A stretch of DNA of 63,686 nucleotides, counting the filler, from Octopus bimaculoides (taxonomy: Eukaryota), in NCBI RefSeq assembly GCF_001194135.2. It is 7 parts of 6 records of this genome, joined end to end, with 100 filler letters (N's around TTAATTAATTAA, not from the genome) between each part and the next. Parts side by side here need not be neighbours in the genome. Positions count along the whole stretch, not along the records: positions 16,963 to 47,155 come from NC_069008.1; 6 more parts are not named here. One strand, given 5' to 3'. Shown here one piece after another: positions 17,067-46,868 of the stretch (positions within the stretch are counted from its first letter, which is position 1; each line of letters begins with the position of its first letter). A model generated the notes under the pieces. It worked only from the letters and a program-made list of their open reading frames with translations. It was not told where the DNA came from and made no database searches. The position numbers and the translations under genes are program-made.

Positions 17067-18518
17067 TCACACTTTCACATGAATAGATGCATGTCTAGTT
17101 AAGTTACTTTTGTATGAGAATGATTTACCACAGACATCACAGTGGTAGGGTGTTTCTCCTGTGTGTATAAATTTGTGTGTAGTTAAGCCACTACTTCGCA
17201 AAAATGATTTACCACAGATATCACAGTGATATGGTCTCTCACCTGTATGAATGCGTTTGTGATTCGTTAAGGCACTGTCTTGAAAGAATGATTTGCCGCA
17301 GGTATCACAGTGGAATGTTCTCTCTCCTGTATGATTACGTTTGTGATTAGTTAAGGCACTGTTTTGAGAGAATGATTTACCACATGTACCACAATGATAT
17401 GGTCTCTCTCCTGTGTGAATAGGTCTATGTCTTCTTAAGTGAGTATTTTCAGTGAATGCTTTGCCACAGATATCACAGTGATATGGTCTCTCTCCTGTGT
17501 GAATACGTATGTGATTAGCTAAGGCACTGTTTTGATAGAATGATTTACCACATGTAACACAGTGAAATGGCTTCTCTCCTGTATGAATACGTGTGTGTTT
17601 AGATAATTCACTGTTTTGAGCAAATGATTTACCACAGATAACACAATGGTATGCCCTCTCTCCTGTGTGAATACGTATGTGATTACCTAAGGCAGTGCTT
17701 TGATAGAATGATTTACCACAGGTATCACAGCGAAATGGCTTTTCACCTGTATGAATACGTTTGTGCTTAGATAAGTCACTGTTTTGAGAGAATGATTTAC
17801 CACAGATATCACAGTGATATGGTTTCTCTCCAGTATGAATACGTTTGTGATTAGTTAAGGCTTTGGTTTGAGAGAATGATTTACCACAGGTGTCACAGTG
17901 AAATGGCTTCTCTCCAGTATGAATACGTTTGTGAATAGTTAAGGTGTTGTTTTGAGAGAATGATTTACCACAGGTGTCACAGTGAAATGGCTTCTCTCCA
18001 GTATGAATACGTTTGTGTCGGCTTAAGTGGGTATTCTGAATGAATGCCTTGCTGCAGATATCACAGTAGTATGGTCTCTCTCCTGTATGAATACGCTTAT
18101 GATTAGTTAAGGCATACTTTTGAGAAAATGATTTACCACAGGTATCACAGTGAAATGGCTTCTCTCCAGTATGAATACGTTTGTGAATAGTTAAGGCATT
18201 GTTTTCAGAGAATGATTTACCACAGATCTCACAGTGATATGGTCTCTCTCCTGTATGAATACGTATGTGTTTATCTAAGGTACTGTTTAGAGAGAATGAT
18301 TTACCACAGGTAACACAGTGATATCGCCTCTCTTCAGTGTGAGTTCGTCTGTGGTTAATTAAGGCACCGTTTTGAGAGAAGGATTTACCACAGGTATCAC
18401 AGTGGAATGGCTTCTCACCTGTATGAACACGAATGTGATTAATTAACTTACTATTTGTTGAGAATGGTTTACCGCAGATTTCACAACTATGTTGTGATTT
18501 TCCCAATTCTTTTGACAT
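17067..18518 (-). CDS. C2H2 zinc-finger protein ZF1, 17 tandem fingers, 483 aa
   Basis: Intact ORF from ATG (MSKELGK) at 18518; CxxC-12-HxxxH fingers with TGEKP/TGERP linkers; the frame is closed upstream by TAA; splice acceptor TTTATTATTTCAG with AG at 18939-18940. Confidence 0.93.
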
Positions 18519-19973
18519 TTCTCTAAGGGATACAAACAGACCCAACCATTGAAGTTTCTCACAGTATTAACATTTTTCCCTTATCCTTCTTCTCTCACCA
18601 AAGCATATAATTTCCTTCTTCTCATTCTTGTATTAATTTATTTCTTAGAAATATTTCAACTGCTATCAACTGTGAATTTATTGTTACCTAAAATTCTGCA
18701 AACTCTTTTCCAAATATATAATTAGAATGCAAAAGCAGCAGATAATGAGATGCAGAAATGGTGCTATGAATCTTCACTCAGAGCAAATAGTTCACAGTAA
18801 TTCCAGTCTAGATTTATAGCAGTTGGGTTATTATATTTGTTCTCTAAAACATTTTCTTTTAATCTTTAGAACATTGGTAAATATTCCAGATGTATCCAAT
18901 GTTAAAAAAGTTGTTTTGTGCCAATGTCATCCATTAATCTGAAATAATAAAGAAACAGTATTAGATATAGAGGAGAGATTAAAATGGTAATGTTACAATA
19001 TTTCTATATTGATTAACAAATGACATCATATAACATTTGGGGGTGTATTCCAAAACATGAATACTTGTCAGAGTGAGAAATAAACGAGGTATGTGGTTAT
19101 AGCAAATGCTAGACAAAGCAGCCAAATCTCCATTTCATCACGCACTTTTACGTCTGAAATTAAACTACTTTTATTTTTTACCGAAAAGGTTTCTCCTGTT
19201 GTTTTTAAATGCGTAGTGCCCACAAAATGGGCCGAAATTGGTCCGGAGAGAACACTAGGGGGTTAGGAGAGTGTGTAAAAGACAAAAAATATTTCTTCAA
19301 ACACATTTTTCTTTTAAATACGATCACTTCCAATAATACAGAAAACAAAAACTCTCAAAACTCCCCGCCAAAACGGAGAAATTCCGTCGTATGTTGGCCA
19401 CACATCGCTGATGGCTTCCATATTTTTCTAACGTTTTTTTCACAATCTGTTGGAGTAGAATCTCTCCCCGATTTATCTACGCACCATACAGTTAAATTGA
19501 AGAATACTCACATGAGCCGACCGAGCAATGAGGACTTATGGAAGAGACAAGAACGACGATAAAACGTGGTTACTGTAAAACGTGTGAAAACAGCGAGCAT
19601 TCGTCAAGGCAGTTGGTTCGAAAACAGCCATTTCACTTCGTTCAATATCATCCTTCTATCATATTGTTGGGCCCACGATTTGTCTCTCAAAGACATTTCT
19701 CATAAGGTCCACTGCATCAAGAATACTTGTGCAATTTCAACGGTGAATTGATTTTACGGACGTAAAATAGGAACTTCGGTCAAACTTAGGAACATCAACA
19801 TGGCTCACTGTAGCGGACCCACGAAGGGTAAAACTGAAAACCTGGACACCTTCAGAGACGGGATGGGCGGAATAGAAGACTCAATCCACGGTATAAGTAT
19901 TCCCGGATTTCTGAAAGCCAGATAAGAGATCCGGCACGAACGATCAATCGATGGATAGGTGTGTATATCTTAC

Positions 19974-20125
19974 CTGTAATGCTATACAAATCAATATTTA
20001 GTGGGAAAATATATTCAATCAAACCAAATCTCCGTGGAAACATACAGAAACACGTTATTGTTTATTCTCCCGAGTCAAGCAGATTCTAGCGGAAACGGAA
20101 GTAGGGTGTGTCATGTGACAAAAGT
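19974..20125 (-). promoter_or_regulatory. Putative promoter and non-coding exon 1 for ZF1 (P1)
   Basis: Donor CAG|GTAAG (GT at 19972-19973); tandem ETS-like CGGAAACGGAAGT 20090-20102; E-box palindrome GTCATGTGAC 20110-20119; module conserved in four copies. Confidence 0.65.
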
Positions 20126-20979
20126 NNNNNNNNNNNNNNNNNNNNNNNNNNNNNNNNNNNNNNNNNNNNNNNNNNNNNNNNNNNNNNNNNNNNNNNNNNN
20201 NNNNNNNNNNNNNNNNNNNNNNNNNNNNNNNNNNNNNNNNNNNNNNNNNNNNNNNNNNNNNNNNNNNNNNNNNNNNNNNNNNNNNNNNNNNNNNNNNNNN
20301 NNNNNNNNNNNNNNNNNNNNNNNNNNNNNNNNNNNNNNNNNNNNNNNNNNNNNNNNNNNNNNNNNNNNNNNNNNNNNNNNNNNNNNNNNNNNNNNNNNNN
20401 NNNNNNNNNNNNNNNNNNNNNNNNNNNNNNNNNNNNNNNNNNNNNNNNNNNNNNNNNNNNNNNNNNNNNNNNNNNNNNNNNNNNNNNNNNNNNNNNNNNN
20501 NNNNNNNNNNNNNNNNNNNNNNNNNNNNNNNNNNNNNNNNNNNNNNNNNNNNNNNNNNNNNNNNNNNNNNNNNNNNNNNNNNNNNNNNNNNNNNNNNNNN
20601 NNNNNNNNNNNNNNNNNNNNNNNNNNNNNNNNNNNNNNNNNNNNNNNNNNNNNNNNNNNNNNNNNNNNNNNNNNNNNNNNNNNNNNNNNNNNNNNNNNNN
20701 NNNNNNNNNNNNNNNNNNNNNNNNNNNNNNNNNNNNNNNNNNNNNNNNNNNNNNNNNNNNNNNNNNNNNNNNNNNNNNNNNNNNNNNNNNNNNNNNNNNN
20801 NNNNNNNNNNNNNNNNNNNNNNNNNNNNNNNNNNNNNNNNNNNNNNNNNNNNNNNNNNNNNNNNNNNNNNNNNNNNNNNNNNNNNNNNNNNNNNNNNNNN
20901 NNNNNNNTATATACACACACATATATATATGCATACATATATATACACACACATATATATATACATGCACATATATATA

Positions 20980-21145: not shown

Positions 21146-21178
<33 letters not shown>

Positions 21179-21411
21179 GTGTGTGTATATGTTTGTGTTT
21201 GTACACCCTAACATCGCTTGACAACCGATGCTGGTGTGTTTACATCCCCGTAACTTAGCGGTTCGGCAATGAGCCCGATAGAATAAGTACTAGGCTTACA
21301 AAGAATAAGTCCCGGGGTNNNNNNNNNNCCCGATAGAATAAGTACTAGGCTTACAAAGAATAAGTCCCGGGGTCGATTTGCTCGACTAAAGGCGGTGCTC
21401 CAGCATGGCCA
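20980..21411 (+). mobile_element. tRNA-derived SINE, family C (CORE-like CCTTGGGCAAGT segment, internal TA/TG tract)
   Basis: GCTGTGTGGTAAG..GGGTTCAGTCCC head; homologous copies at 25042 and 31063. A 45-bp segment is duplicated across the 10-N gap (assembly overlap). Confidence 0.88.
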
Positions 21412-23184: not shown

Positions 23185-23796
23185 TCAGACTTTCATATGG
23201 ATAGATGCATGTGTAGTTAAGTTACTTCTCCAAGAGAACGACTTGCCACAGACATCACAGTGATGTGGTTTTTCTCCTGTATGTAGCAATTTGTGTTGAG
23301 TTAAGGCACTATTTTGAGAAAATGAGGAACCACAGATATCACAATCATATGGTTTCTCCCCTGTATGAATACGTTTATGTTGAGTTAAGGTACTGTTCTG
23401 AGAGAAGGATTTACCACAGATATCACAGTGATATGGTTTCTCCCCTGTATGAATACGTTTGTGTTTAGTTAAGTTACTGTTCTGAGAGAAGGATTTACCA
23501 CAGATATCACAGTTATATGGTCTCTCTCCTGTATGAATACTTTTATGTTTAGTTAAGTGATTGGTTTGAGAGAATGATTTACCACAGGTATCACAGTGGA
23601 ATGGCTTCTGACCTGTATGAACACGAATGTGTTTATTCAAGTTACCACTTATAGAGAATGATTTACCACAGGTATCACAGTGAAATGGTCTTTCTCCTGT
23701 ATGAATACGTATGTGTGTAGTTAATTCACTGTCTTGAGAGAATGATTTACCACAGATTTCACAGCAATGATGTGATTTTCCTAAATCTTTTGACAT
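23185..23796 (-). CDS. C2H2 zinc-finger protein ZF2, 7 fingers, 203 aa
   Basis: Intact ORF MSKDLGK...HASIHMKV*; acceptor AG at 24224-24225. Confidence 0.92.
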   Translation of the reverse strand: MSKDLGKSHHCCEICGKSFSQDSELTTHIRIHTGERPFHCDTCGKSFSISGNLNKHIRVHTGQKPFHCDTCGKSFSQTNHLTKHKSIHTGERPYNCDICGKSFSQNSNLTKHKRIHTGEKPYHCDICGKSFSQNSTLTQHKRIHTGEKPYDCDICGSSFSQNSALTQHKLLHTGEKPHHCDVCGKSFSWRSNLTTHASIHMKV

Positions 23797-25041
23797 TTCT
23801 CTGAGGGATACAAACAGACCCAACCATTGAAGTTTCTCACAGTATTAAATTTTCCCCTTATCTTTTGTCTCACAGCACAGCATGTAATTTCCTTTCTCTT
23901 CTTATTCTTATAATTTATTTCTTAGAAATATTTCAACTGCTATCAACTGTGATTTTATTGATATCTAAAACTCTGCAAACTCCTTTGCAAATATATTCAA
24001 GTTTAATTAGAATGCAATAACACCAGATAATGAGATGCAGAAATGGTGCTATGAATCTTCGCTCAGAGCAAATATTTCACAGTAATTCCAGTCTAGATTT
24101 ATAGCAGTTGGGTTATTATATCTGTTCTCTAAAACATTTTGCATTAGTTTTTAAGAAACTGATAAATATTCCAGATGTTTCCAATGTTAAAAAAGTCGTT
24201 TTATGCCAATGTCATCCGTGAATCTAAAATAATAAAGAAACAGTATTAGATATAGAGGAGAGATTAAAATATAAATGTTACAACATTTCTTTATTGATTA
24301 ACAAAAGACATCAAATAACATTGGGTGAAATCTAAAAATTTGTAAACTACAACTACACCTTCACATTGTGTATATAAAGATATATGTATATCATCATTTC
24401 TTCAGTCTGCGCAGAAATATCTAAAATCTGCCTTGTTTATAATTATACCATATATCCCATGATTGGTATGGTTCAGAGCGGATAAAAATCATAAAGTTTG
24501 GAAAACAATAGTTTTAAATGCAGAAATAAATTTATGCTATTAATGGTGGTGGTGGTGGTGGTATTCCAAAATAGCGACACTTGCCAGAGTGAGAAAGAAA
24601 CAAGGAACATGGTTTGTGGTTATGGGATATGCTAGACAAAGCAGCCAAATCTCCATTTAATCACACACCTTTACGTCTGAAAATACTTTTTTTATTCTTT
24701 TTTACCGAAAGAGTTTCTCCTATGATTTTTAATTGCAAAATGCCCAGAAAAGGCACCGAAATTGGTTAGGAAAGGGGAAAACTGGTGGAATAGGACTCTG
24801 TGTAAGAAACAAAAAACAAATAAATAAATAACTTCTTCAAAAAAATTCTCTTTTAAATGAAGCGATCATTTCCAAGAATANNNNNNNNNNNNNNNNNNNN
24901 NNNNNNNNNNNNNNNNNNNNNNNNNNNNNNNNNNNNNNNNNNNNNNNNNNNNNNNNNNNNNNNNNNNGGGCTTTTATTTTTCGAAATACGTAGAAAAAAA
25001 AGATTCTGGAAAAAAATTGGTTGGCAAAATTTCAATTTTTC

Positions 25042-25578: not shown

Positions 25579-26405
25579 NNNNNNNNNNNNNNNNNNNNNN
25601 NNNNNNNNNNNNNNNNNNNNNNNNNNNNNNNNNNNNNNNNNNNNNNNNNNNNNNNNNNNNNNNNNNNNNNNNNNNNNNNNNNNNNNNNNNNNNNNNNNNN
25701 NNNNNNNNNNNNNNNNNNNNNNNNNNNNNNNNNNNNNNNNNNNNNNNNNNNNNNNNNNNNNNNNNNNNNNNNNNNNNNNNNNNNNNNNNNNNNNNNNNNN
25801 NNNNNNNNNNNNNNNNNNNNNNNNNNNNNNNNNNNNNNNNNNNNNNNNNNNNNNNNNNNNNNNNNNNNNNNNNNNNNNNNNNNNNNNNNNNNNNNNNNNN
25901 NNNNNNNNNNNNNNNNNNNNNNNNNNNNNNNNNNNNNNNNNNNNNNNNNNNNNNNNNNNNNNNNNNNNNNNNNNNNNNNNNNNNNNNNNNNNNNNNNNNN
26001 NNNNNNNNNNNNNNNNNNNNNNNNNNNNNNNNNNNNNNNNNNNNNNNNNNNNNNNNNNNNNNNNNNNNNNNNNNNNNNGTATTTCGCAGAAAATGCGATT
26101 GTTTGGGGGTGAAACTTAGTCTACTTAGGAACATTCTGCTCAACATGGCTCACTGTAGCGTAGTGTTGTGTGCTCTGGAGTAAAGCAATCTGAATTAGAT
26201 ATGACCAGAGAAGATAAAGAGATGGGGGTGACAGCACGGAAGGCCACAGTCCCCCGGGACCCACGAAGGGTAAAGCTGAAAGTAGCCAAAGAATCGACAG
26301 GCAGACAGACAGATACTTCACTAGCAGTGAGCACTTTCACTTCTGACAGCTAATAGCATGACAGTGCCCGTACGATCAATCGATGGATAGGTGTGTATAT
26401 CTTAC

Positions 26406-26700
26406 CTGTAATGCTATACAAATCGATATTTAGCGTGAAAACATTTCCTCACACGAAATCTCCGTGAAGACATACAAAAACACGTAACGGCAGCTTCTAG
26501 AGGAAACGGAAGTAGGGTGTGTCATGTGACAAAAGTAAATCCACCGCTCTCTAGTTAATGAAACCAAAAGTGTTAATATTTTGATACGAATCACCATGGT
26601 TACTGTGGTTAACATCTGGCTCTGATAAACGAATCTTCATTATTGTCTCCATCGGCCGTGGTGGTGATCTTCTAAAAGATATGTTTTATACTTCATTCTG
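26406..26700 (-). promoter_or_regulatory. Putative promoter and non-coding exon 1 for ZF2 (P2), with conserved upstream block
   Basis: CAG|GTAAG donor (GT at 26404-26405), GGAAACGGAAGT, GTCATGTGAC at 26521-26530. Confidence 0.65.
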
Positions 26701-26712
26701 AATAACATTGCT

Positions 26713-26805
26713 TAAGGCGGCGATCTGGCAGAATCGGTAGCGCGCTGGACGGAATGCTTCGCGGTATTCCGCCCGTCTCTACGTTCTGAGTTCAAATTCC
26801 ACCGA
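26713..26805 (+). mobile_element. SINE family B head, co-duplicated upstream of the promoter module
   Basis: AAGGCGGCGATCTGGCAGAATCG..GTTCTGAGTTCAAATTCC; same relative position at ~33443 and ~43255. Confidence 0.8.
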
Positions 26806-28757: not shown

Positions 28758-29957
28758 TCACACTTTTACATGGATAGATGCATGTCTAGTTAACTGACTT
28801 CTCTGTGAGAATGATTTACCACAGAAATCACAGTGATATGGTCTCTCTCCTGTATGAATACGTTTGTGTGTGGTAAAGCACGCGTTGTCAGTGAAAGATT
28901 TATCACAGACATCACAGTGATATGGTTTCTCTCCTGTGTGAATACGTTTGTGTGTAGTTAAGGCATTGTTGTGAGAAAAAGATTTACCACAGGTATCACA
29001 GTGAAAAGGCTTCTCACCTGTATGAATACGTTTGTGTCTTCTTAACCGAGAATTTTCAGCGAATGCCTTTCCACAGATATCACAGTGGTATGGTCTCTCT
29101 CCTGTATGTATAAATTTGTGTGTAGCTAAGCCACTACTTTGCAAAAATGATTTACCACAGAAATCGCAGTGATATGGTCTCTCTCCTGTATGAATGCGTT
29201 TGTGATTAGTTAAGTGAGTGTTTTGAGAGAATGATTTACCACAGATATCACAATGATGTGGTCTCTCTCCTGTGTGAATACGTCTGTGTCTTCTGAACTG
29301 AGAATTTTCAGCGAATGCCTTACCACAGATATCACAGTGGTATGGTCTCTCTCCTGTATGTGTAAATTTGTGTGTAGTTAAGGCACTACTTTGCAAAAAT
29401 GATTTACCACAGATATCACAGTGGTATGCTCCCTCTCCTGTATGAATGCGTTTGTGATTAGTTAGGGTACTGTTTTTAGAGAATGATTTACCACAGATCT
29501 CACAGTGGTATGGTCTCTTTCCTGTGTGAATATGTATGTGATTAGTTAAGGAAACCGCTTGAGAGAATGATTTACCACAGGTAACACAGTGAAATGGTTT
29601 TTCTCCTGTATGAATACGTATGTGTTTAGTTAAGTTACTGTTTTGAAAGAATGATTTACCACAGATATCACAGTGATGTGGTCTCACTTCAGTGTGAATA
29701 CGTTTATGTTTAGTTAAGTTAGTTTTTGCAGAGAATGATTTACCACAGGTAACACAGTGAAATGGTTTCTCTCCTGTGTGAGTTCGTCTGTGGTTAATTA
29801 ACGCACCTTTTTGAGAGAATGATTTACCACAGGTGTCACAGTGAAAGGGCTTCTCACCTGTATGAACATGAATGTGATTAACTAACTTACTATTTGTTGA
29901 GAATGATTTACCACAGATTTCACAACAATGTTGTGATTTTCCCAATTCTTTTGACAT
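28758..29957 (-). CDS. C2H2 zinc-finger protein ZF3, 14 fingers, 399 aa
   Basis: Intact ORF MSKELGK...HASIHVKV*; acceptor AG at 30384-30385. Confidence 0.93.
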   Translation of the reverse strand: MSKELGKSQHCCEICGKSFSTNSKLVNHIHVHTGEKPFHCDTCGKSFSQKGALINHRRTHTGEKPFHCVTCGKSFSAKTNLTKHKRIHTEVRPHHCDICGKSFFQNSNLTKHIRIHTGEKPFHCVTCGKSFSQAVSLTNHIHIHTGKRPYHCEICGKSFSKNSTLTNHKRIHTGEGAYHCDICGKSFLQSSALTTHKFTHTGERPYHCDICGKAFAENSQFRRHRRIHTGERPHHCDICGKSFSQNTHLTNHKRIHTGERPYHCDFCGKSFLQSSGLATHKFIHTGERPYHCDICGKAFAENSRLRRHKRIHTGEKPFHCDTCGKSFSHNNALTTHKRIHTGEKPYHCDVCDKSFTDNACFTTHKRIHTGERPYHCDFCGKSFSQRSQLTRHASIHVKV

Positions 29958-30554
29958 TTCTCTGAGGGATACAAACAGACCCAACCATTGAAGTTTCTCA
30001 CAGTATTAAATTTTTCCCTTATATTTCTTCTCTCACCAAAGCATGCAATTTCCTTTCTCTTCTTCTTGTTATAATTTATTCCCCAGAAATATTTCAACTG
30101 CTATCAACTGTGATTTTATTGATATCTAAAATTCTGCAAACTTCTTTGCAATTATATTCAAGTTTAATTAGAATGCAAAAACACCAGATAATGAGATGCA
30201 GAAATGGTGCTATGAATCTTCGTTCAGAGCAAATATTTCACAGTAATTCCAGTCTAGATTTATAGCAGTTAGGTTATTATATTTGTTCTCTAAAACATTT
30301 TCTTTTAGTCTTTAGAACATGGTAAATATTCCAAATGTCTCCAATGTTAAAAAAGTTATTTTGTGCCAAAGTCATCCATTAATCTGAAATAATAAAGAAA
30401 CAGTATTAGACATAGAGGAGAGATCAAAATGGAAATGTTGCAACATTTCTATATTGATTAACAAATGACATCATATAACTTTGGGTGAAACCTAAAAATT
30501 TGTAAACTACAACTACACCTTCACATTGTGTAACATTAAATACATATATATTAT

Positions 30555-31050
30555 GTGTGAGTATCATGTAAAAAAACACCATCTGAGTGTTGGGCCTCAT
30601 GGGGGCAACATGGCCAGTGTATGTGTCACATAACTGGCACCTGTGCAAATGGGCCATCTGTGAATCGCCTGGCCTCAAGGAGGCAATGTGTCCGATACCA
30701 TTGCCGTGTGGGTGGCACATAAAAAGTACCTTTGGAGTGCTGGGCCTCACATAAGCTGGCGCTTAAGAGGCACCTTTGGAGTATTGGTCCACACGGAAGG
30801 AATGACATATGACAAAGATCTTTAGCAATATGATGTGCTTGAGAAGAAGATCCATGAAGCCAAGTGAAATCAAAGTCATGGCAGATATCGGTTTCACTCA
30901 ACTGGTACCCATAAACAAGCATTAAGAAGGGCATCCAGCTGCAGAAACCATGCCAAATCTGACTGGAGTCTGGTGCAGCCCCCTCATCTTACCAGCCTTG
31001 GTCAAACCATCCGCCCATGGACAACAGACATCAAATGACGATGATAATGA
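30555..31050 (+). mobile_element. RTE-type LINE 3' end (non-coding tail)
   Basis: AAGAAGGGCATCCAGCTG motif and (GAT)n tail; homologous to the tail attached to the RTE C-terminus at 39477-40135. Confidence 0.7.
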
Positions 31051-31062
31051 TATATTTATATA

Positions 31063-31404
31063 CAGGAGTGGCTGTGTTGTAAGTAGCTTGCTTAGCAACC
31101 ACATGGTTCCGGGTTCAGTCCCATCGCATGGCACCTTGGGCAAGTGTCTTCTACTATAGCCTCAGGCCGACCAAGAGCTTTTGAGTGGATTTGGTAGATG
31201 GAAACTGAAAGAAGCCCGTCGTATATATGTATATGTGTGTCAACCAATGCTGGTGTGTTTACGTCCCCGTAACTTAGCGGTTCGGCCTAAGAGACTGACA
31301 GAATAAGTACTAGGCTTACAAGGAATAAGTCCTGGAGGCGATTTGTTCGACTAAAGGCAGTGCTCCAGCATGGCCGCAATCAAATGACTGAAACAAGTAA
31401 AGGA
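31063..31404 (+). mobile_element. SINE family C, near full length
   Basis: CAGGAGTGGCTGTG head through CAGCATGGCCGCAATCAAATGACTGAAAC. A further partial copy lies at ~31590-31815. Confidence 0.88.
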
Positions 31405-32381: not shown

Positions 32382-33113
32382 TAAGTGACAGTCCAGGGGG
32401 AAAAGAGGGGATTCCATTGAGATGAATGTCTGTCTTGGAATTGGTTTCATGTATTTTGAACAACACAAGAGACTTTGAAGTACAGGTGCTACTCATTTTT
32501 CCCAGTTGAGTGAACTGGAGCAATGTGAAGTTAGGGTTAGGGAATTCCGTCCCTAACCGTAACCCAACACCCTAGTGAAGATCGTGTGGGTGTTAATCTG
32601 AGAAATTTACCGAAATTTCTCCGTTTTGACAGGGATTTTTCATATCCATTTTTTTTACGTTGCCCTTCGAAATGATCTGAAGTATCTTTTTAACAAAATA
32701 ATTTTTCGAAACATTAATACAATCTAAACTTTGAATTGATTTTACGGACATAAAATAGGAAATTATCCCGTGTTGTCTTTAGAGTATGTCATTAGATCTG
32801 TTCTTTGGTGAAACTTAGTCTACTTAGGAACATTCTGCTCAACATGGCTCACTGAAGCGTAGTGTTGTGTGCTCTGGAGTAAAGCAATCTGAATTAGATA
32901 TGACCAGAGAAGATAAAGAGAGCGGGAGGCGGCACAGAAGGCCACAGTCCCCCGGGACCCACAAAGTGTAAAGCTGAAAACCTGATCATCTTCAGGGACA
33001 GGAAGGGCGGAGCCGAATACTCAATACACGGTATAAGTATTCCCGGATTTCTGGAAGCCAGATAAGAGATCCGGCACGTACGATCAATGGATGGATAGGT
33101 GTGTATATCTTAC

Positions 33114-33430
33114 CTGTTATGCTACACAAATCGATATTTAGTGGGAAAATATATTCAATCACACCAAATCTCCGTGGAAACATACAGAAACACGTTATTG
33201 TTTATTCTCCCGAGTCAAGCAGATTCTAGCGGAAACGGAAGTAGGGTGTGTCATGTGACAAAAGTAAACTCACCGCTCTCTAGTAAGTAAAACCAAAAGT
33301 GTTAATATTATGATGCAAATCACCATGGTTACTGTGGTTAACATCTGGCTCTGATAAACGAATCTTCGTTATTGTCTCCATCGGCCGTGGTGGTGATCTT
33401 CTAAAAGATATATTTGATATTTCATTCTGA
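33114..33430 (-). promoter_or_regulatory. Putative promoter and non-coding exon 1 for ZF3 (P3)
   Basis: CAG|GTAAG donor (GT at 33112-33113), CGGAAACGGAAGT, GTCATGTGAC 33250-33259, octamer ATGCAAAT 33313-33320. Confidence 0.65.
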
Positions 33431-33442
33431 ATAACATTGCTT

Positions 33443-33615
33443 AAAACGGCGATCTGGCAGAATCGGTAGCGCACTGGACGGAATGTTTAGTGGTATTTCT
33501 CCCATCGTTATGTTCTGAGTTCAAATTCCGCCGTAGTCCAGTTATCCTTTCGGAGTCGATAAAATAAGTACAACTGAAACACTGGGGTCGGTGTAATCGA
33601 TTCATCACCTCCGTC
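33443..33615 (+). mobile_element. SINE family B, degenerate
   Basis: GGCGATCTGGCAGAATC..GTTCTGAGTTCAAATTCCGCC..CACTGGGGTCG. Confidence 0.8.
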
Positions 33616-34858: not shown

Positions 34859-36027
<1,169 letters not shown>

Positions 36028-36300
36028 TTCTCTGAGGGATAATAGGTTTATTATATCTGTTCTCTAAAACATTTTCCTTTAGTCTCTAAACCAGGATGAA
36101 TGTTCCAATGTTAAAAAAGTTGTTTTGTGCCAATGTCATCCATTAATCTGAAATAATAAAGAAACAGAATTAGATATAGAGGAGAGATTAAAATGGAAAT
36201 GTTACAATATTTCTTTATTGATTAACAAAAGACATCAAATAACATTGGGCGAAATCTAAAAATCTGTAAACTACAACTTCATTTTTTGCAACATTACATA

Positions 36301-36332
<32 letters not shown>

Positions 36333-36339
36333 TAGACAA

Positions 36340-36800
36340 AATGAGATAACAAAGCAAAGTCTGTGAGGAGTTTACAGTACATTTATGAGGAAAAAGATAT
36401 AGATGTAGCCTTACAGCTGTTTCTGGGATATTATGGATATCCCTTCATCAGAGATGACGAAAGATGGTTAAATAGAAGTAAATATTTGAGTTCGAAATAA
36501 GGAATTATTTTGGAAAAGGAGGAGATAGGGAATATAGAGGGAAGTAAAATATATATGGATATTGTAATTGCAGTTCCATTATGCAAGGAAAGTGGGGTAT
36601 AGAAATGGTAAAAATGTCTCCTATACATGGTAGTTCATGTTTAGCTATTTGAAAGTATGGAGCCATGGATTCTGTGTTGTTCATTCAAAAGGGTCTTGTG
36701 GTGTGAATGAAAACTTGAGAGTGTATTGGTATTTATTTGTGGATAGATGGTGGGGAAGGGTGTGTCTGAGTCGAATGAGGAGGAAGGTCAAAATGAAAAC
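36340..36800 (-). mobile_element. Probable Penelope-like 3' fragment (degenerate ORF end plus hammerhead-bearing UTR)
   Basis: Weak similarity of HTLPHHLSTN..KFSFTPQDPF to PLE endonuclease C-termini, followed by a hammerhead motif. Confidence 0.5.
36407..36456 (-). ncRNA. Type I hammerhead ribozyme motif
   Basis: Minus strand CATCT-CTGATGA-A-GGGATAT-CCATA-ATATCCC-A-GAAA-CAGCTG-TA-AGGCT: perfect 7-bp stem II, palindromic stem III ACAGCTGT, GUA triplet; stem I only 3 bp. Confidence 0.62.
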
Positions 36801-36906
36801 AGGGAGAGAAAATGGGAGGAAGAAAGAGTGACAGACATGCTCACAATTCTGCCAGCTTGCTACCTTATTTAGCAAAGACATTAAATATAACAACAATATA
36901 TTCGCT

Positions 36907-37149
36907 GCCAGTGCCCCTGGACTGGCTTGTGCGGGTGGCACATAAAAGACACCATTTCGAGCGTGGCCGTTTTCGTGCGGGTGACACGTAAAAGCACCCA
37001 CTACACTCTCTGAGTGGTTGGCGTTAGGAAGGGCATCCAGCTGTAGAAACTCTGCCAAATCAGACTGGAGCCTGGTGTTGCCATCCGGTTTCACCAGTCC
37101 TCAGTCAAATCGTCCAACCCATGCTAGCATGGAAAGCGGACGTTAAACG
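36907..37149 (+). mobile_element. RTE-type 3' tail element
   Basis: GGCGTTAGGAAGGGCATCCAGCTGTAGAAAC..GGAAAGCGGACGTTAAACG; it interrupts sequence homologous to 34535-34620. Confidence 0.8.
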
Positions 37150-37520
37150 TTGAAGTATGTTATATGCAGTATATCCAGGAGCATGTTTATACTTCAAACA
37201 TCACAATATGTTATCTTGCCAATGCAGGTTATAACNNNNNNNNNNNNNNNNNNNNNNNNNNNNNNNNNNNNNNNNNNNNNNNNNNNNNNNNNNNNNNNNN
37301 NNNNNNNNNNNNNNNNNNNNNNNNNNNNNNNNNNNNNNNNNNNNNNNNNNNNNNNNNNNNNNNNNNNNNNNNNNNNNNNNNNNNNNNNNNNNNNNNNNNN
37401 NNNNNNNNNNNNNNNNNGGGGTCAATGATTTTGTTAAGGGCACAAAGGTTAAGCCGTGATTTGACAGGAGAAACGGATTTGAAATATTGAGTGTTCTAAT
37501 GAATTTTAACAATGATAGAA

Positions 37521-38889
37521 TCATATTTTCCCATGGGTTGCTGCATGTATAGTCAAGTTCTTTCTCCGAAAAAATGATTTACCGCAGATATCGCAGTGAA
37601 ATTGTCTCTCACCTGTATGAGTACGTTTGTGACTAGTTAATACCTTCCTCTGTGAGAATGATTTCCCACAGATATCACAGTGATATGCTTTTTCCTCCAG
37701 TATGTATACAATTGTGTTTAGTTAAGGCACTATTTTGTGCAAATGATTTACCACAGGTAACACAGTGATATGGCTTCTCTCCTGTATGAATACGTATGTG
37801 TCTAGTTAAGGTTCTACTTTCAGAGAACAATTTACCACAGATATCACAGTGATATGGCCTCTCTCCAGTGTGAATACGTCTATGTCCTCTTAGGACACTC
37901 CTGTCAGAGAATGCTTTGCCACAGATATCACAGGTATATGGCTTCTCTCCTGTATGAATACGTTTGTGTGTAGTTAAGGTACTGTTTGCAGAGAATAATT
38001 TCCCACAGATATCACAGTGATATGGTTTTTCTCCTGTATGTATAAATTTGTGTTTAGTTAAGGCACTATTTTGAGCAAATGAGAAACCACAGATATCACA
38101 ATTATATGGCTTCTCCCCTGTATGAATACGTTTGTGTTGAGTTAAGGTTCTCTTTTGAGAGAATGATTTACCACAGGTATCACAGTGAAATGGCTTCTCA
38201 CCTGTGTGAACACGAATGTGTTTAATCAAGTTATCACTACTAGAGAATGATTTACCGCAGGTATCACAGCGATGTGGTTTCTCTCCTGTATGAATACGTC
38301 TGTGTCCTCTTAAGACAATATTGTGTGAGAATGCTTTGCCACAAATTTCACAGCTATATGGCTTCTCTCCTGTATGAATACGTTTGTGACTGCTTAACTG
38401 ACTATTCTTAGAGAATGCCTTACCACAAATACCACACTGATATGTTTTCTCTCCTGTATGGATAAGTTTGTGACTGCTTAACTGACAATTTTGAGAGTAT
38501 GCTTTGCCACAGATATCACAGTGATATGGTCTCTCTCCTGTGTGAATACGCCTATGTCCTCTTAACACACTACTGTCAGAGAATGATTTACCACAGATAT
38601 CACAGTGGTGTGGTCTCTCTCCAGTGTGAATACGTCTGTGAACTCTTAAGACACTACTGTCAGAGAATGCTTTGCCGCAGATATCACAGTTATATGGCTT
38701 CTCTCCTGTATGAATACGTTTGTGTGTCGTTAAGGTAACTTTTTGAGAGAATGACTTATCACAGGTAACACAGTGAAATGGCTTCTCACCTGTATGAACA
38801 CGTATGTGACTAATCAAGTTACTGCTTGTTGAGAATGATTTACCACAGATTTCACAACTATGTCGTGATTTTCCCAATTCTTTTGACAT
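37521..38889 (-). CDS. C2H2 zinc-finger protein ZF5, 14 fingers in frame plus 2 behind a +1 frameshift
   Basis: ORF to 37675 has 14 fingers; ACTGGAGGAAAAAGCATATCAC carries one extra base near 37695; the shifted frame continues [53 protein letters not shown]. Acceptor AG at 39306-39307. Confidence 0.85.
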
Positions 38890-39476
38890 TTCTCTGAGGG
38901 ATACAAATAGACCCAACCATTGAAGTTTCTCACAGTATTAAATTTTTCCCTTATCCTTCTTCTCTCACTACAGTATATAATTTTCTTATTCTTTTTCTTG
39001 TTGTAATTTATTCCTTGGAAATAATTCAACTGCGATTTCATCAGTATCTAAAATTCTACAAAACTCCGTTGCAAATATATTCAAGCTTAATTAGAATGCA
39101 AAAGCCCCAGGTAATGAGATGGAGAAATGGTGCTATGAATCTTCGCTCAGAGCAAATATTTCATGGTAATTCAACCTTAGATTAATAGCCATTGGCTTAT
39201 TATATCTGTTCTCTTAAACGTTTTCCTTTAGTCTTTAAGACATGATAAATATTCCAGATGTTTCCAATGTACAAAAGTCGTTTTATGCCAATGTCACTCA
39301 TTAATCTGAAATAATAAAGAAACAGTATTAGATATAGAGGAGAGATTAAAATGGAAATGTTACAACATTTCTTTATTGATTAACAAATGACATCATATAA
39401 CTTTGGGTGAAATCTAAAAATTTGTAAACTACAACTACACCTTCACAGTGTGTAACATTACATATATATATATATA

Positions 39477-40135
39477 TCATCATTGTTTAACATCCACTTT
39501 CCATGGTGGACTGAGGACTGGCAAGCCAGGAGGCTGCACCAGACTCAAATCTGATCTGACATTGTATCTACAGCAGGATGCCCTTCCTAACTCCAACCTC
39601 TCTGAGAGTGCAGTGGGGGTGGGGGCCTTTTATGTACCGCCGGCATGGGTGGCAGTTAGGCACAGGATCCAGTCGGGTTGGGTGTCGAGGGACTGGCATC
39701 GACCACGCTAGGATGTTCCACTGGCACAGGGAGCCAGTCAGGTGGCACACTTGAATGGTGCTTATTACAAGCCACTAGCATGGGTGCCAGCCAGGCGGCA
39801 TTGGCCAAAAAAACAATTTCCAGTTTGATTTTGATTGACTCAACAGGTTTTATGTGCAGTGTATCACCTGATGCTTGAAGGGTACTTTTAAACGGGGTCG
39901 TTATGTGACACTGGTATAGGCTACGGTTGTGATCTTAATCACAGCATATCTCCAAAGGCCGCAGTCTCTTGTCATTGCCTCTGTGAGGCCCAGCATTCAA
40001 AGGTCGTGCTTGACCACCTCATCCCATGTCTTCCTGGGTCTCCCTCTTCAGCAGGTTCCTTCCACTGTTAGGGTGCGACACTTCTTCACACAGCTCTCCT
40101 CATCCATATGCAGCACATGACCATACCAGCTAAGT
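39477..40135 (-). mobile_element. RTE-clade LINE 3' fragment (ORF C-terminus and 3' UTR)
   Basis: LSWYGHVLHMDEESCVKKCRTLTVEGTC*RGRPRKTWDEVVKHDL, followed by the GAAGGGCATCC tail and (ATG)n. Confidence 0.88.
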
Positions 40136-40499: not shown

Positions 40500-42938
40500 C
40501 GTAAATGCATTAAAAATACCACAGCATAATCTGATCCCAATTTCACAAAATTATCAACGTTCTCTTTGAGCATTTAAAAGAGATATTTCCGTGGGGCAAA
40601 ATGATTGAAACAAGAGAAAGTAAATTTGTAACATATACAAATTAATATCTATCCTTAGACATGAGAAATGCAACAAAAATTTTAAATAATTGGAAGAGAA
40701 TTACGGCAAAATGGCACAGGGTATAAAATTAACAAAACTGAACAAAATGAGAAGGCTCAACATGAAATATATTTGAGACATCAGTGAAAGGTGACCTATA
40801 AAAGTTGGAATTTTCTTCGTTTTGACGAGGATTTTTCAACATTTTTTTTCACGTTGCCCTTGGAAATTATCTGGAGCAGTGATTTTCAAACTGTGGTCCG
40901 CAAGGACAAGACAGGGGGTCCGTGAACAGCAAATACTTTTTATGGGCAATTTGATTTTATATATGTTTTTTAATCGAAATCTTTTAATTGACAATAAACC
41001 TATTTGTTAAATAAACAAATGTAAAAATATATGCTATTTTAAGCAAATATTTATGTATAAATTTCCTAAGGTAAAGCCTGAAATATAAAGGGGAGCAACT
41101 TTTTAACCCCAAATGTTTTTTTTTTTAAACTTTTCCTGGACCGATTTTGTGGGCACGATAAACTTAAAAACTACAGAACCCTTTTTGTGAAGAAGAAGAA
41201 AAAAGGGAAGTATTTTCAGTCGAAAAGGTGTAATTTAAGGGAGATTTTGCTGTTGTTTCTAGCATATGGTATGACTGGCAAGGTTTACGGATNNNNNNNN
41301 NNNNNNNNNNNNNNNNNNNNNNNNNNNNNNNNNNNNNNNNNNNNNNNNNNNNNNNNNNNNNNNNNNNNNNNNNNNNNNNNNNNNNNNNNNNNNNNNNNNN
41401 NNNNNNNNNNNNNNNNNNNNNNNNNNNNNNNNNNNNNNNNNNNNNNNNNNNNNNNNNNNNNNNNNNNNNNNNNNNNNNNNNNNNNNNNNNNNNNNNNNNN
41501 NNNNNNNNNNNNNNNNNNNNNNNNNNNNNNNNNNNNNNNNNNNNNNNNNNNNNAAAAAAAAAAAGGGAATATTTTCAAATGAAAAGCTGCGATTTAAGGG
41601 AGACTTGGCTATTATTTCTAGCATATCCCATGACGGGTAAGGTTTAGGGGTTGATAAAAATCATAAATTCTAACAAAAAGTTTTTAATAGCATACAAGAG
41701 TTTATGGTATTAATAGGGGGGGAGGTGTATTAAAAAATATCAATACTTGTCAGATTAAAAAATAAACGACGAAGGTGGTCATAGGATATGCTAGACACCA
41801 CAGTCAAATCTCCATTTAATCACACACCGTTACGTCTGAAAAGATTTGCTTTTCCCTTTAACGAAAACGGTTTCTTCTATGGTTTGTAAGTCCGTAGTGC
41901 CCACAAAATGGACCGAAATTGGTTCGGAGAGGGGAAGACGGGGGGAATAGGAATGTGTGTAAAAAACATTTCTTCAAAAACACTTTTCTTTTAAGTGATG
42001 CAATCATTTCCAAGGGTATAGAGATAAAAAAATCTGAGAAATAGCCGCTGACGATTTCCATATTTCGGTACTATTCAAGAAGAGTGCGCGCACTTGTGCT
42101 AGCTAGTCGTAACTAGTCGATCCTACATCGACTCTCAGAATAACGGTCAGGTACAAAGACTAAAAACCTATTTTTTTTTATCTTCTGGGACCACTCTTCT
42201 TGAATCGTACCCCATATTTCTACGGTTTGTTCACAATCTGCTGGAGTAGAAACCCTCTCCGGGATTTATTTACGCAGGAAGCACCTAAGAGGAGGAATCC
42301 TCACATGTGCTTACCATGCAACGTGGACTTACAAATAAATGAGACATGAACGACGGTAAAACAGGTGGTTACTCTAATACGTGCAATAACAAAGCGAGCA
42401 TTCGTCAAGGAAATTGGTTCGAAAACAGCCATCTCACTTTGTTCAATATCATCCTTCTATCATATTGCTGGGCCGACGACTTCTCTCTCAAAGACATTTC
42501 TCATAAGGTTCACTGCAACAAGAATACTTATGGAATTCATTGATGCAATTTAAACTGTGAATTGATTTTACGGATTGTAAAATAGGAAATTATCCCATGT
42601 TGTCCTGTGTGTGTCATTCCATCTGTCCTTTGGTGAAACTTAGTCTACTTAGGAACATTCTGCTCAACATGGCTCACTGTAGCGTAGTGTTGTGTGCTCT
42701 GGAGTAAAGCAATCTGAATTAGATATGACCAGAGAAGCGAAAGAGATGGGGGTGACAGCACGGAAGGCCACAGTCCCCCGGGACCCACAAAGTGTAAAGC
42801 TGAAAACCTGGACATCTTCAGAGAAAGGAAGGGGTAACAGAATACTCAATACACAGTATAAGTATTCCCGGATTTCTGGAAGCCAGATAAGAGATCCGGC
42901 ACGTGCGATCAATCGATGGATAGGTGTGTATATCTTAC

Positions 42939-43225
42939 CTGTTATGCTATACAAATCAATATTTAGTGGGGAAAACATACAAAAACACGTTATTCTTCTC
43001 GCGAGCCAAGCAGGTTGCAAAGCAAACGGAAGTACTGTGTCATGTGACAAAAGTAAACCTACCGCTCTCTATTAAATGAAACCAAGAATGTTATCATAAA
43101 GGGGAATTAATAATTAATAATATTTTGATGCAAATCACCATGGTTACTGTGGTTAACATCTGGCTCTGATAAACGACTCTTCATTATTGTCACCATCGGC
43201 CGTGGTGGTGATCTTCTAAAAGAAA
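42939..43225 (-). promoter_or_regulatory. Putative promoter and non-coding exon 1 upstream of ZF5 (P5)
   Basis: CAG|GTAAG donor (GT at 42937-42938), CGGAAGT, GTCATGTGAC 43039-43048, ATGCAAAT 43128-43135. Confidence 0.65.
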
Positions 43226-43644
43226 TATGGCGATCTAAGCTCGCCGACATTGCTTCAGGCGGCAGAATCGTTAGCGCGCTGGACGAAATACTTAGCGGTA
43301 TTTTGCCCATCTCTACGTTCGGAGTTCAAATTCTGGCGTCATTTTAGGGGTCGATGAAATAGCTTCAAAGGCATGGGTTGGACAGTTTGAGAAGGAATTG
43401 AACGTTGGAAGGCTGCAGCAGGCAGTACAGACGTTTAACAAAGATTTTGTCATCCGAGTCTAGTCACGAAGTTTTATACGACCCAAGGCTACAATTCAAT
43501 ACGCTTTTCGAAAGTGTTATGCAGCTGAAACGAAATGTCAGAAACTCGAGATTAATGTCCTGAGAGGAAGATTTTATTAAAAACATCGTAGTACTAAGTT
43601 ATCTCCCTTACATAGATACAGTCGTGGATAGGATTTCTATGAAA

Positions 43645-43710
43645 CAGCGGTCCCCAGCCTTTTTTATACCACGGACCGGCTTCATGCCGGACAATCTTTC
43701 CGCCGACCAA
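43645..43710 (+). mobile_element. hAT/Charlie-like terminal fragment
   Basis: CAGCGGTCCCCAGCCTTTTTTATACCACGGACCGG resembles hAT-Charlie termini. A paralogous trace lies at ~21888 and a similar end at ~40876. Confidence 0.45.
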
Positions 43711-45623: not shown

Positions 45624-46403
45624 TCACACTTTCACATGGATAGACACATGTCTAATTAAGGTTCTTCTTTGAAAGAATAATTAACCACAGGAATCACAGT
45701 GATATGGTTTCTCTCCTGTATGAGTACGTTTGTGACTAGTTACTCCCTTCTTCTGAGAAAATGATTTCCCACAGATATCACAGTGATGTGGTTTTTCTCC
45801 TGTATGTATAAATTTGTGTTTAGTTAAGGCACTATTTTGAGCAAATGAGAAACCACAGATATCACAATTATATGGCTTCTCCCCTGTATGAATACGTTTG
45901 TGTTGAGTTAAGTTTCTATTTTGAGAGAATGATTTACCACAGGTATCACAGTGAAATGGCTTCTCACCTGTATGAACACGAATGTGTTTAATCATGTTAC
46001 TGCATATAGAGAATGATTTACCACAGATATTACAGTGATGTGGTCTCTCTCCTGTGTGAATACGCCTATGTACGCTTAAGACACTACTGTCAGAGAATGA
46101 TTTACCACAGATATCACAGTGATGTGGTCTCTCTCCTGTGTGAATATGCCTGTGTACACTTAACACACTCCTGTCAGAGAATGCTTTGCCACAGATATCA
46201 CAGCAAAATGGCTTCTCTCCTGTATGAATACGTTTGTGTGTAGTTAAGGTACTGTTTTGAGAGAATGACTTACCACAGGTAACACAGTGGAATGGCTTCT
46301 CACCTGTATGAACACGAATGTGATTAATCAGTTTACTGCTTGTAGAGAATGATTTACCACAGATTTCACAACTATGTTGTGATTTTCCCAATTCTTTTGC
46401 CAT
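45624..46403 (-). CDS. C2H2 zinc-finger protein ZF6, 8 intact fingers plus a ninth broken by a premature TAA
   Basis: TAA at 45681-45683 replaces the conserved Lys of CG-K; the frame continues LFFQRRTLIRHVSIHVKV* to the paralogous stop. Acceptor AG at 46687-46688. Confidence 0.87.
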
Positions 46404-46868
46404 TTCTCTGAGGGATACAAACAGACCCAACCATTGAAGTTTCTCACAGTATTAAATTTTCCCCTTATCTTTTGTCTCACAGCACAGCATGTAATTTCCT
46501 TTCTCTTCTTATTCTTNNNNNNNNNNNNNNNNNNNNNNNNNNNNNNNNNNNNNNNNNNNNNNNNTTCACAGTAATTCCAGTCTAGATTTATAGCAGTTGG
46601 GTTATTATATTCTTTAAAACCCTTCACCTTAGTCCAGATGTGTCCAATATTTAAAAAGTTATTTTGTGCCAATGTCATCCATTAATCTGAAATGATAAAG
46701 AAACAGTATTAGATATAGAGGAAAGATCAAAATGGAAACGTTCTAACATTTCTATATTAATTAACAAATGACATCATTTAACATTGGGTGAAATCTAAAA
46801 ATTTGTAAACTACAACTACACCCTCACATTGTGTAACATTACATGCATATATATATGTGTGTGTGTGT

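Follow-up and report, generated by a model that had tools for sequence, protein, structure and literature searches.

Six zinc-finger cassettes in Octopus bimaculoides stand in a row with only four candidate promoter/exon-1 modules to serve them, which raises the question of whether the row is one alternative-last-exon system fed by shared promoters, as an earlier sequence-only reading proposed, or a series of separate genes. The cassettes lie in a 30-kb segment of the window (the whole stretch of 63,686 nt, along which all positions are counted), and this segment is an exact match to the chromosome record CM046628.1 (GCA_001194135.2; record position = window position + 16,623,410). It contains six paralogous poly-C2H2 zinc-finger ORFs (ZF1-ZF6), all on the minus strand, with homology that is unit-wide, a unit spacing of 2.9-7.5 kb and 80-97% mutual likeness of the units. 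The reading we favour, at a probability of roughly 0.62, is that complete zinc-finger genes, recent duplicates belonging to the lineage-specific C2H2 expansion of O. bimaculoides, stand here head to tail and would act as separate transcription units, ZF4 being a 5'-truncated member.

The coding sequences are as follows.

17067..18518, minus strand: ZF1 coding sequence, 483 aa, 17 canonical C2H2 fingers, ATG at 18518
23185..23796, minus strand: ZF2 coding sequence, 203 aa, 7 fingers; a single-exon CDS in the deposited record
28758..29957, minus strand: ZF3 coding sequence, 399 aa, 14 fingers; a single-exon CDS in the deposited record
34859..36027, minus strand: ZF4 coding sequence, containing a 10-N gap (35324-35333)
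37675..38889, minus strand: ZF5 coding sequence, 404 aa, 14 fingers
45681..46403, minus strand: ZF6 coding sequence, 240 aa, 8 fingers

Each product has a 10-residue head ahead of finger 1, followed by 7-17 fingers of canonical C-x2-C-x12-H-x3-H form with TGEKP-type linkers and a constant 28-residue spacing. Across 67 canonical fingers the Cys, His and linker residues are invariant and variability is confined to the helix contact positions, while pN/pS over the first 50 codons is 0.11-0.70. Two of the genes are altered at their 3' ends: a 1-nt frameshift near 37690-37700 removes two further fingers from ZF5, which would otherwise end at 37521, and the last finger of ZF6 is interrupted by an in-frame stop, without which it would end at 45624. 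Only zf-C2H2 and zf-H2C2_2 type families match in Pfam, with no KRAB, SCAN, BTB or other non-zinc-finger or effector domain in the products, and no coding exon is common among the units. In a protein database search with ZF3, vertebrate KRAB zinc-finger proteins dominate among the matches listed (at most 57% identity, in the finger region only) and no cephalopod protein appears among the 120 listed; a search with the family-specific 49-aa N-terminus gave no candidates. Exact cluster look-ups placed 0 of five ZF products in the collection, and by exact-product look-up ZF2 and ZF3 match the genome record only, with ZF1, ZF5 and ZF6 not on record.

Upstream of the coding sequences lie six near-identical acceptor-like sites, CTAATACTGTTTCTTTATTATTTCAG/ATTAATGGATGAC with 0-3 mismatches, at the six positions given by the sequence-only reading.

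18519..18940, minus strand: ZF1 leader (420 nt) and candidate acceptor AG at 18939-40; a second acceptor-like AG at 18523-24
24224..24225, minus strand: ZF2 candidate acceptor AG
30384..30385, minus strand: ZF3 candidate acceptor AG
36028..36149, minus strand: ZF4 leader (just 120 nt) and intact candidate acceptor AG at 36148-49
39306..39307, minus strand: ZF5 candidate acceptor AG
46687..46688, minus strand: ZF6 candidate acceptor AG, with 467 nt of ZF6 intron within the segment

Further upstream, four conserved, CpG-rich modules of ~690 nt (n=4) each carry the donor ACAG/GTAAGATATACACACC (CAG/GTAAGA; 11.1 bits), identical in all of them, and from these sequence signals each module probably comprises a promoter and exon 1.

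19815..20125, minus strand: P1 candidate promoter/exon-1 module, last exon base 19974; cut by a 782-N gap
26092..26804, minus strand: P2 candidate module, last exon base 26406; a SINE-like element at its upstream edge
32745..33534, minus strand: P3 candidate module, last exon base 33114
42572..43339, minus strand: P5 candidate module, last exon base 42939

The four modules are 84-97% identical, and the CpG observed/expected ratio reaches 1.0-1.5 solely around them, against a segment median of 0.45. A profile of the ~690-nt module searched over the whole segment (nhmmer --max) matched these four copies and no fifth, in agreement with the earlier placing of the donors at these four sites alone and of nothing module-like between the ZF4 acceptor and ZF5. 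The likeness of acceptors, donors and modules among the units stems from duplication of one unit and is not independent recurrence. The contrast of six cassettes with four modules thus holds as a count but overstates the shortfall: ZF6, said to lack a module, is cut by the segment edge, only 467 nt upstream of its acceptor being present compared with introns of 1.0-3.6 kb elsewhere (ZF6 and the ZF4 stub excluded). ZF6 is therefore not among the assessable units, and four of the five that are assessable appear to be complete two-exon genes. ZF4 alone among the five has no recognisable promoter/exon-1 module.

In the favoured reading a normal unit would start with a CpG-rich, TATA-less promoter module containing an ETS-like ACTTCCG core, pass through a short non-coding exon 1 ending in CAG/GTAAGA and a repeat-loaded 1.0-3.6-kb intron, and finish in a single exon holding a ~420-nt leader and the entire coding sequence. 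The predicted product is the 10-residue head followed by 7-17 C2H2 fingers, with the effector domain absent, and diversity would stem from duplication of whole genes, from 84-nt finger repeats being gained or lost, and from gene conversion. For ZF4, we infer a rearrangement that broke at a (TA)n(TG)n microsatellite in the intron, which would have cost the gene its promoter, its exon 1 and the greater part of intron 1 and left the acceptor ~1.37 kb downstream of the ZF5 stop codon. The features that bear on this are the following.

36150..36335, minus strand: ZF4 intron stub, matching the other introns at 84-95% identity, with the (TA)n(TG)n microsatellite at its end
36336..36833, minus strand: spacer of ~500 nt, unique within the segment, with no module homology and low CpG
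36834..37520, minus strand: ZF5 3' flank, collinear with the ZF4 3' flank and containing a 182-N gap (37236-37417)
39509..39617, minus strand: SINE-like arm within the intron of unit 5, in inverted orientation to 36997-37148

The coding sequence of ZF4 is not decayed. The 10-N gap within it is flanked by an artefactual duplicate of 211 nt (35113-35323 = 35334-35544), and once this overlap, which inflates the protein by ~2.5 fingers, is collapsed, ZF4 encodes an intact 315-aa product that has 11 fingers and ends, as is normal, in HASLHMKV*. Its acceptor is likewise intact (1 mismatch in 39 nt), and upstream of it 150 nt of homologous intron are kept, the homology stopping at the microsatellite. 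The leader has lost ~298 nt relative to the paralogues. Precise intron loss does not account for this deletion: its boundaries are not GT..AG, and the leader retains the CCCTCAG motif. Nor is ZF4 a processed (retro)pseudogene: it keeps the acceptor and the 150 nt of homologous intron, and its 3' flank is common to the paralogues. Beyond the stub, the spacer shows no homology above shuffled controls to other inter-unit DNA. The missing module cannot hide in the adjacent 182-N gap, since the blocks on either side of it are collinear with the ZF4 3' flank, so that only ~70 nt are implied to be missing, and no fifth module was found; both the earlier placing of this gap within the ZF5 3' flank and the statement that ZF4 has no module of its own are upheld. 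Without one, any expression of ZF4 would depend either on transcripts reading through from the ZF5 unit or on a new start site. The proposal that ZF4 is either dead or fed from P5 was a fair pair of options, of which the first is not favoured by the coding sequence.

The foremost alternative, though an unlikely one, is that ZF4 is a working promoterless cassette, P5 transcripts skipping the ZF5 acceptor and poly(A) site to join 42939>36147. The ORF and acceptor of ZF4 are intact whereas ZF5 and ZF6 each bear a 3' defect, a non-coding exon 1 imposes no frame constraint, and the ZF4 acceptor is near, ~1.37 kb past the ZF5 stop and ~590 nt beyond the first AATAAA (36737, in the spacer). The geometry also fits the rule described for read-through splicing, by which one gene's second-to-last exon joins the second exon of the next on the same strand within less than 30 kb (PMC4450057). 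That the ZF5 promoter also serves ZF4 is possible, and would be an event of this known type. As in cis-SAGe/conjoined genes, ZF5 and ZF4 share a strand and are ~1.37 kb apart, well within 30 kb; they differ in that the 3' gene, ZF4, has lost its first exon, which would leave the fusion as its sole path to expression. Less likely still is the more specific version in which ZF4 is live as an alternative terminal exon of the ZF5 unit with inverted SINE-like arms helping to loop out the ZF5 exon. A SINE-like insertion of ~250 nt (about 36903-37152) in the ZF5 3' flank and the arm in the unit-5 intron bracket that exon, with a duplex energy of -178 kcal/mol compared with -68 +/- 5.6 for shuffles; however, in a genome rich in repeats such inverted pairs are common. 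Several further points weigh against a working cassette: the nearest identical acceptor, that of ZF5, would normally be favoured, most transcripts would be terminated by cleavage downstream of ZF5, the deposited record has no annotation for ZF4, and the intact ORF of ZF4 may simply reflect a recent deletion.

As doubtful as the loop-out version is the possibility that the real ZF4 unit is normal and carries a module, short reads having collapsed or mis-joined the ZF4-ZF5 interval. The array is repeated and was assembled, with gaps, from short reads; the 30-kb segment has 11 N gaps, and one scaffold join lies in this interval. The two 10-N gaps each mark a contig overlap left unmerged (211 identical nt around 35324-35333 and 45 identical nt around 21319-21328), and the larger N gaps fall in introns or intergenic DNA. 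Three gaps, at 37236-37417, 41293-41553 and 46517-46564, come on top of those listed beforehand. The 80-97% likeness of the units and a breakpoint at a microsatellite would favour such an error, and ~60 nt that are 100% identical between ZF2 and ZF6, adjoining a gap, hint at cross-talk. Against this, the passage from stub to microsatellite to unique DNA to zinc-finger 3' flank lies entirely within one gap-free contig (35334-37235), and collinearity across the 182-N gap leaves just the ~70 nt unaccounted for.

Less probable again is an arrangement in which the modules are not exons at all, the genes being single-exon with a start in the leader near the ATG and the donor and acceptor motifs mere passengers of duplication. 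Module conservation can be explained by recent duplication alone, and module homology extends ~370 nt beyond the donor with similar identity. Sites that resemble a donor and score 9 bits or more are so frequent (27 in the segment on the same strand, ~1 per kb) that the donor motif by itself proves little. The most conserved non-coding block (96-98%) lies directly 5' of the ATG, and in it a second acceptor-like site, TCTGTTTGTATCCCTCAG/AGAAATG, falls 4 nt ahead of every ATG; together with several upstream ATGs within the ~420-nt leader, this means that the actual exon structure may differ from that drawn here. The upstream site is the presumed acceptor, and the earlier description of one terminal exon behind a conserved acceptor stands for the acceptor and is uncertain for the exon. 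The deposited annotation gives ZF2 and ZF3 as single-exon CDS, but such a listing covers coding extents only and is silent on untranslated exons. What argues for the two-exon model is that the CpG-rich islands map to the modules rather than to the leaders, that a local conservation peak (97% versus 75-90% nearby) sits on the polypyrimidine/branch region of the upstream acceptor, and that the donor is invariant in 4/4 modules despite indels 20-60 nt upstream. For an intron internal to the leader, the only donors are GTGAGA sites, which are weak (4.6-7.3 bits) and poorly conserved.

Finally, an array-wide system in which any exon-1 donor chooses among several downstream cassettes, much as in Drosophila lola or mod(mdg4), is very improbable: identical donors, near-identical acceptors and a non-coding exon 1 make cross-unit joins chemically possible, but a CpG-rich module and strong donor of its own accompanies each of four cassettes out of the five assessable, the apparent lack of a module at ZF6 is an edge effect, there is neither a common coding exon nor any N-terminal domain such as BTB, joining across units is nowhere shown by the DNA, and the comparable diversity of cephalopod protocadherins is made by full gene duplication, not splicing (PMC9068888; PMC12513265).

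The favoured reading of separate, duplicated genes places the locus among known systems. Large tandem C2H2 arrays are known from coleoid genomes (PMC9068888; PMC12513265), and the present units share with them many-finger C2H2 products, TGEKP-type linkers, same-strand tandem paralogues and repeat-rich DNA. The locus is a small stretch of this expansion, in the very species, with nothing essential that is different, and as it stands it adds little, tandem C2H2 arrays being a published hallmark of octopus genomes and truncated duplicates expected in them. In the literature searched on the coleoid expansion we found no description of the unit-level anatomy or of a promoterless copy such as ZF4. 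Vertebrate KRAB clusters resemble the octopus array as tandem, rapidly evolving poly-zinc-finger genes with all fingers in a large 3' exon, in which slippage of repeats alters the number of fingers and most variability falls on DNA-contact residues; the octopus genes differ in having no KRAB or SCAN domain and a 5' exon that is predicted to be non-coding.

In Drosophila, lola and mod(mdg4) combine common 5' exons and a BTB domain with many alternative zinc-finger 3' exons. Their likeness to the octopus locus lies in a row of zinc-finger-encoding terminal exons on one strand. The octopus array, in contrast, lacks both a BTB domain and a coding 5' exon common to the units, the exon-1 reading frame is not preserved from module to module, its cassettes are whole genes with their own ATG, and promoterless cassettes are limited to ZF4, four of the five assessable ones having a module. 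Some practical value lies in the unit-level anatomy (CpG-rich module, putative non-coding exon 1, leader exon and effector-less finger array), in the recognition of both 10-N gaps as unmerged overlaps, and in the ZF5-ZF4 pair, where the junction 42939>36147 offers a precise case in which to ask whether read-through splicing can rescue promoterless zinc-finger copies. Were it to rescue ZF4, this would be a route by which tandem gene families evolve into alternative-terminal-exon genes; were ZF4 a terminal exon of the ZF5 unit, the pair would represent, in a cephalopod, an early stage toward a lola-like gene in which a single promoter serves several DNA-binding arrays.

Among the remaining elements of the segment, Rfam searches (E <= 0.1) gave sub-threshold microRNA-model matches on TA/CA microsatellites and one weak scaRNA match, which we treat as noise. 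ARAGORN detects no tRNA-like gene; the element upstream of the modules may be tRNA-derived, judging only from a box-B-like motif. The fragment between ZF4 and ZF5 that had been called Penelope-like does not bear the name out: its 137-aa ORF (36681-37094) matches no Pfam family and the other frames are unrecognisable by eye, and the element belongs to a short interspersed repeat of which the segment has four copies.

The best-supported reading of the zinc-finger array, with a probability of about 0.6, is that it arose by tandem duplication of a complete two-exon gene, every copy having a CpG-rich promoter to itself. The six C2H2 paralogs (ZF1-ZF6) lie in the NC_069008.1 piece (window 16963-47155, G+C ~38%), which is identical to chromosome record CM046628.1 (GCA_001194135.2; record position = window + 16,623,410, with which a second locus agrees). 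Window 18758-39957 is the exact reverse complement of a 21.2-kb locus in that record.

Coding sequences of the six genes (window coordinates)
17067-18518, minus strand: ZF1, 483 aa, 17 fingers, no defect
23185-23796, minus strand: ZF2, 203 aa, 7 fingers, no defect
28758-29957, minus strand: ZF3, 399 aa, 14 fingers, no defect
34859-36027, minus strand: ZF4, 315 aa after collapse of an assembly duplicate, 11 fingers, no defect
37675-38889, minus strand: ZF5, 404 aa, 14 fingers, 1-nt frameshift removes two further fingers
45681-46403, minus strand: ZF6, 240 aa, 8 fingers, in-frame stop inside the last finger

The proteins begin with MSKELGKS (MSKDLGKS in ZF2, MAKELGKS in ZF6) and finger 1 starts at residue 10 in all six. 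In a set of 67 fingers the zinc ligands and the H-T-G-E-K/R-P linker show little or no variation, most of the entropy sitting at the DNA-contacting helix positions, and pN/pS is 0.11-0.70 for the first 50 codons; the six proteins look like functional, diversifying DNA-binding arrays. Pfam recovers zinc-finger families only, with no KRAB, SCAN, BTB or other effector domain in the six proteins. The ZF5 frameshift falls at window 37690-37700 (the last two fingers being lost) and the ZF6 stop at 45681-45683, in the context CG*LFFQ.

The acceptor 39-mer CTAATACTGTTTCTTTATTATTTCAG|ATTAATGGATGAC is present in six copies with 0-3 mismatches (zero expected by chance) and the donor ACAG|GTAAGATATACACACC in four (last exon base 19974, 26406, 33114 and 42939), all exactly where the sequence-only reading had placed them. 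The donors sit within a conserved module of ~690 nt (P1, P2, P3 and P5, the promoter/exon-1 modules of ZF1, ZF2, ZF3 and ZF5), implying putative introns of ~1.0, 2.2, 2.7 and 3.6 kb. The ETS-like core of the module, TCACATGACACACCCTACTTCCGTTTCC, is identical in P1-P3. CpG observed/expected is 1.0-1.5 at the modules against a median of 0.45; these are the sole CpG-rich stretches in the piece, with none upstream of ZF4 or ZF6 within it. A CpG-rich SINE-like element with a box-B-like motif, GAGTTCAAATTCC, antisense to the gene, marks the upstream edge of the module (window 26783-26804, 33512-33533 and 43317-43338, plus strand, in complete modules). Since it is found at modules only it belongs to the duplicated unit, and it may contribute to their CpG-rich signal; ARAGORN finds no tRNA in these edge elements. 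A profile search with all heuristic filters off returned no fifth module, nothing besides the four copies scoring better than E = 0.37.

Six cassettes had been set against four modules. The module count stands, but the deficit was over-counted: the ZF6 acceptor lies only 467 nt from the piece edge, far below any of the four introns, so that its missing module is an edge effect and not assessable, and 4/5 assessable units are complete. The lack of a module at ZF4, by contrast, was read correctly. Upstream of its acceptor a 150-nt intron stub, 84-95% identical to other units, runs to a (TA)n(TG)n microsatellite (36300-36335) where intron homology ends, followed by a ~500-nt spacer (36336-36833) unique within the piece and by blocks of 69 nt (36834-36902) and 22 nt (37153-37175) that are collinear with their matches in the 3' flank of ZF4 itself and have a SINE-like insertion of ~250 nt between them. 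Farther from ZF4 come a 182-N gap and then the first 105 nt of the ZF5 3' flank. Collinearity predicts ~70 nt within this gap, leaving no space for a 690-nt module, and the stub-microsatellite-spacer-3' flank junction lies within one gap-free contig (35334-37235). The region's 'Penelope-like' label found no backing, as no Pfam family matches its 137-aa ORF (36681-37094). On the duplication reading ZF4 is a 5'-truncated copy, the simplest cause being a deletion with one end at the microsatellite of the intron; TA/CA microsatellites of a similar kind also lie upstream of P1 and P2.

No decay is seen in the ZF4 ORF or acceptor. Its leader, the stretch between acceptor and ATG, carries a 298-nt deletion with microhomology-type ends; intron loss was rejected, the boundaries not being GT..AG, and a retrocopy origin was rejected because intron sequence is kept. 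The promoterless ZF4 is fully intact, whereas ZF5 and ZF6 each have a 3' coding defect. Three near-identical consecutive fingers (window 34928-35306; 84-nt repeats, 91% matches) indicate a very recent internal finger amplification.

Splicing of P5 exon 1 to ZF4 is physically plausible, if unlikely. ZF4 has kept its acceptor intact, exon 1 is non-coding, and the first AATAAA lies 784 nt past the ZF5 stop, only ~590 nt ahead of the ZF4 acceptor. In addition, inverted SINE-like arms (39509-39617 and 36997-37148) flank the ZF5 exon with a predicted RNA duplex of -178 kcal/mol (-68 +/- 5.6 for shuffles), and their pairing could loop out that exon in a read-through transcript. Such a join, if made, would belong to a known phenomenon, the read-through cis-splicing of adjacent genes on one strand, which preferentially links a second-to-last exon to a second exon (PMC4450057). 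Further copies of the arm repeat lie at 30919-31068 and 46887-47037.

Assembly collapse, set against the gap-free ZF4 junction, is rather improbable. The piece holds 11 N runs, three of them (37236-37417, 41293-41553 and 46517-46564) beyond those listed before. The two 10-N gaps each mark a contig overlap left unmerged: 211 nt on either side of 35324-35333 are 100% identical (duplicate spanning 35113-35544), and at 21319-21328 45 nt are duplicated at 100% identity (window 21274-21373). Only the gap at 35324-35333 hits coding sequence, the others being intronic or between units, with 46517-46564 breaking the ZF6 leader. Collapsing the duplicate yields one continuous ZF4 frame with the family C-terminus HASLHMKV*; in the deposited assembly the overlap adds ~2.5 artificial fingers and shifts the frame.

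The units resemble one another because a single unit was duplicated, and recurrence of motifs is therefore not independent evidence. That the modules are not exons is distinctly unlikely: module homology does extend ~370 nt past the donor at similar identity, and 27 donor-like sites of >= 9 bits occur on the gene strand, many of them codons of the HTGEK linker, but the polypyrimidine/branch tract of the acceptor is a local conservation peak (97% vs 75-90% nearby) and the donor is unchanged despite indels 20-60 nt upstream, two observations that favour genuine splice signals. Among non-coding blocks, conservation is highest in the 75 nt directly 5' of the ATG, which are 96-98% identical among copies and so exceed the rest of the leader (75-90%) and the coding-sequence start (~88-92%).

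Conserved pre-ATG block (window coordinates)
18519-18593, minus strand: block of ZF1
23797-23871, minus strand: block of ZF2
29958-30032, minus strand: block of ZF3
38890-38964, minus strand: block of ZF5
46404-46478, minus strand: block of ZF6

ZF4 retains the last 13 nt alone. Inside the block lies a second acceptor-like site, TCTGTTTGTATCCCTCAG|AGAAATG (CCCTCAG|AGAAATG). The ~420-nt leader contains several upstream ATGs, and as no well-conserved internal donor was found in it, the second site may serve exon 1 as an alternative acceptor. Within putative exon 1 (window 19975-20040 and equivalents, minus strand) a short frame starts at an ATG, reaches the donor and would terminate 2 codons past the upstream acceptor, for an upstream ORF of ~24 codons. 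P1, P3 and P5 retain this frame, although P5 has a 30-nt deletion; in P2 a 2-nt deletion breaks it.

The proposed shared-promoter, alternative-last-exon system thus keeps partial support for ZF4 only and is very improbable array-wide, with 4/5 assessable units complete. Defining features of lola/mod(mdg4)-type loci are absent, the cassettes having their own promoters, sharing no coding exon and lacking a BTB domain, and the lack of a KRAB domain sets the locus apart from KRAB-ZFP clusters. It is part of the tandem C2H2 expansions already described in coleoids (PMC9068888, PMC12513265). Cephalopod protocadherin diversity likewise arose by full gene duplication, not alternative splicing (2022 genome paper, PMC9068888), in agreement with the array here.

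The tandem duplicates would have evolved by unequal exchange of 84-nt finger repeats and, given mosaic identities and a ~60-nt ZF2/ZF6 stretch, by gene conversion too. In that stretch, beside the 48-N gap, ~60 nt of the ZF6 leader are 100% identical to ZF2 (46430-46516 vs 23823-23909) while adjoining segments are 84-90% identical, which suggests either a gene-conversion tract or cross-talk in assembly or gap closing.

The deposited annotation gives ZF2 and ZF3 a single coding exon each and does not include ZF4 or ZF5. A 1035-aa gene model from the ATG of ZF1 (15279-20612 of L002, a CM046628.1 locus reaching beyond the piece; window 18518 down to 13185 and beyond) overruns the ZF1 stop codon and crosses a ~1.9 kb N gap that starts exactly at the left edge of the piece. 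Downstream of ZF1 and outside the piece, an opposite-strand 148-aa ORF (L002 19141-19587) with the motif HPAYSPNISPPDH resembles, by eye, the C-terminal part of a mariner/Tc1-type transposase.
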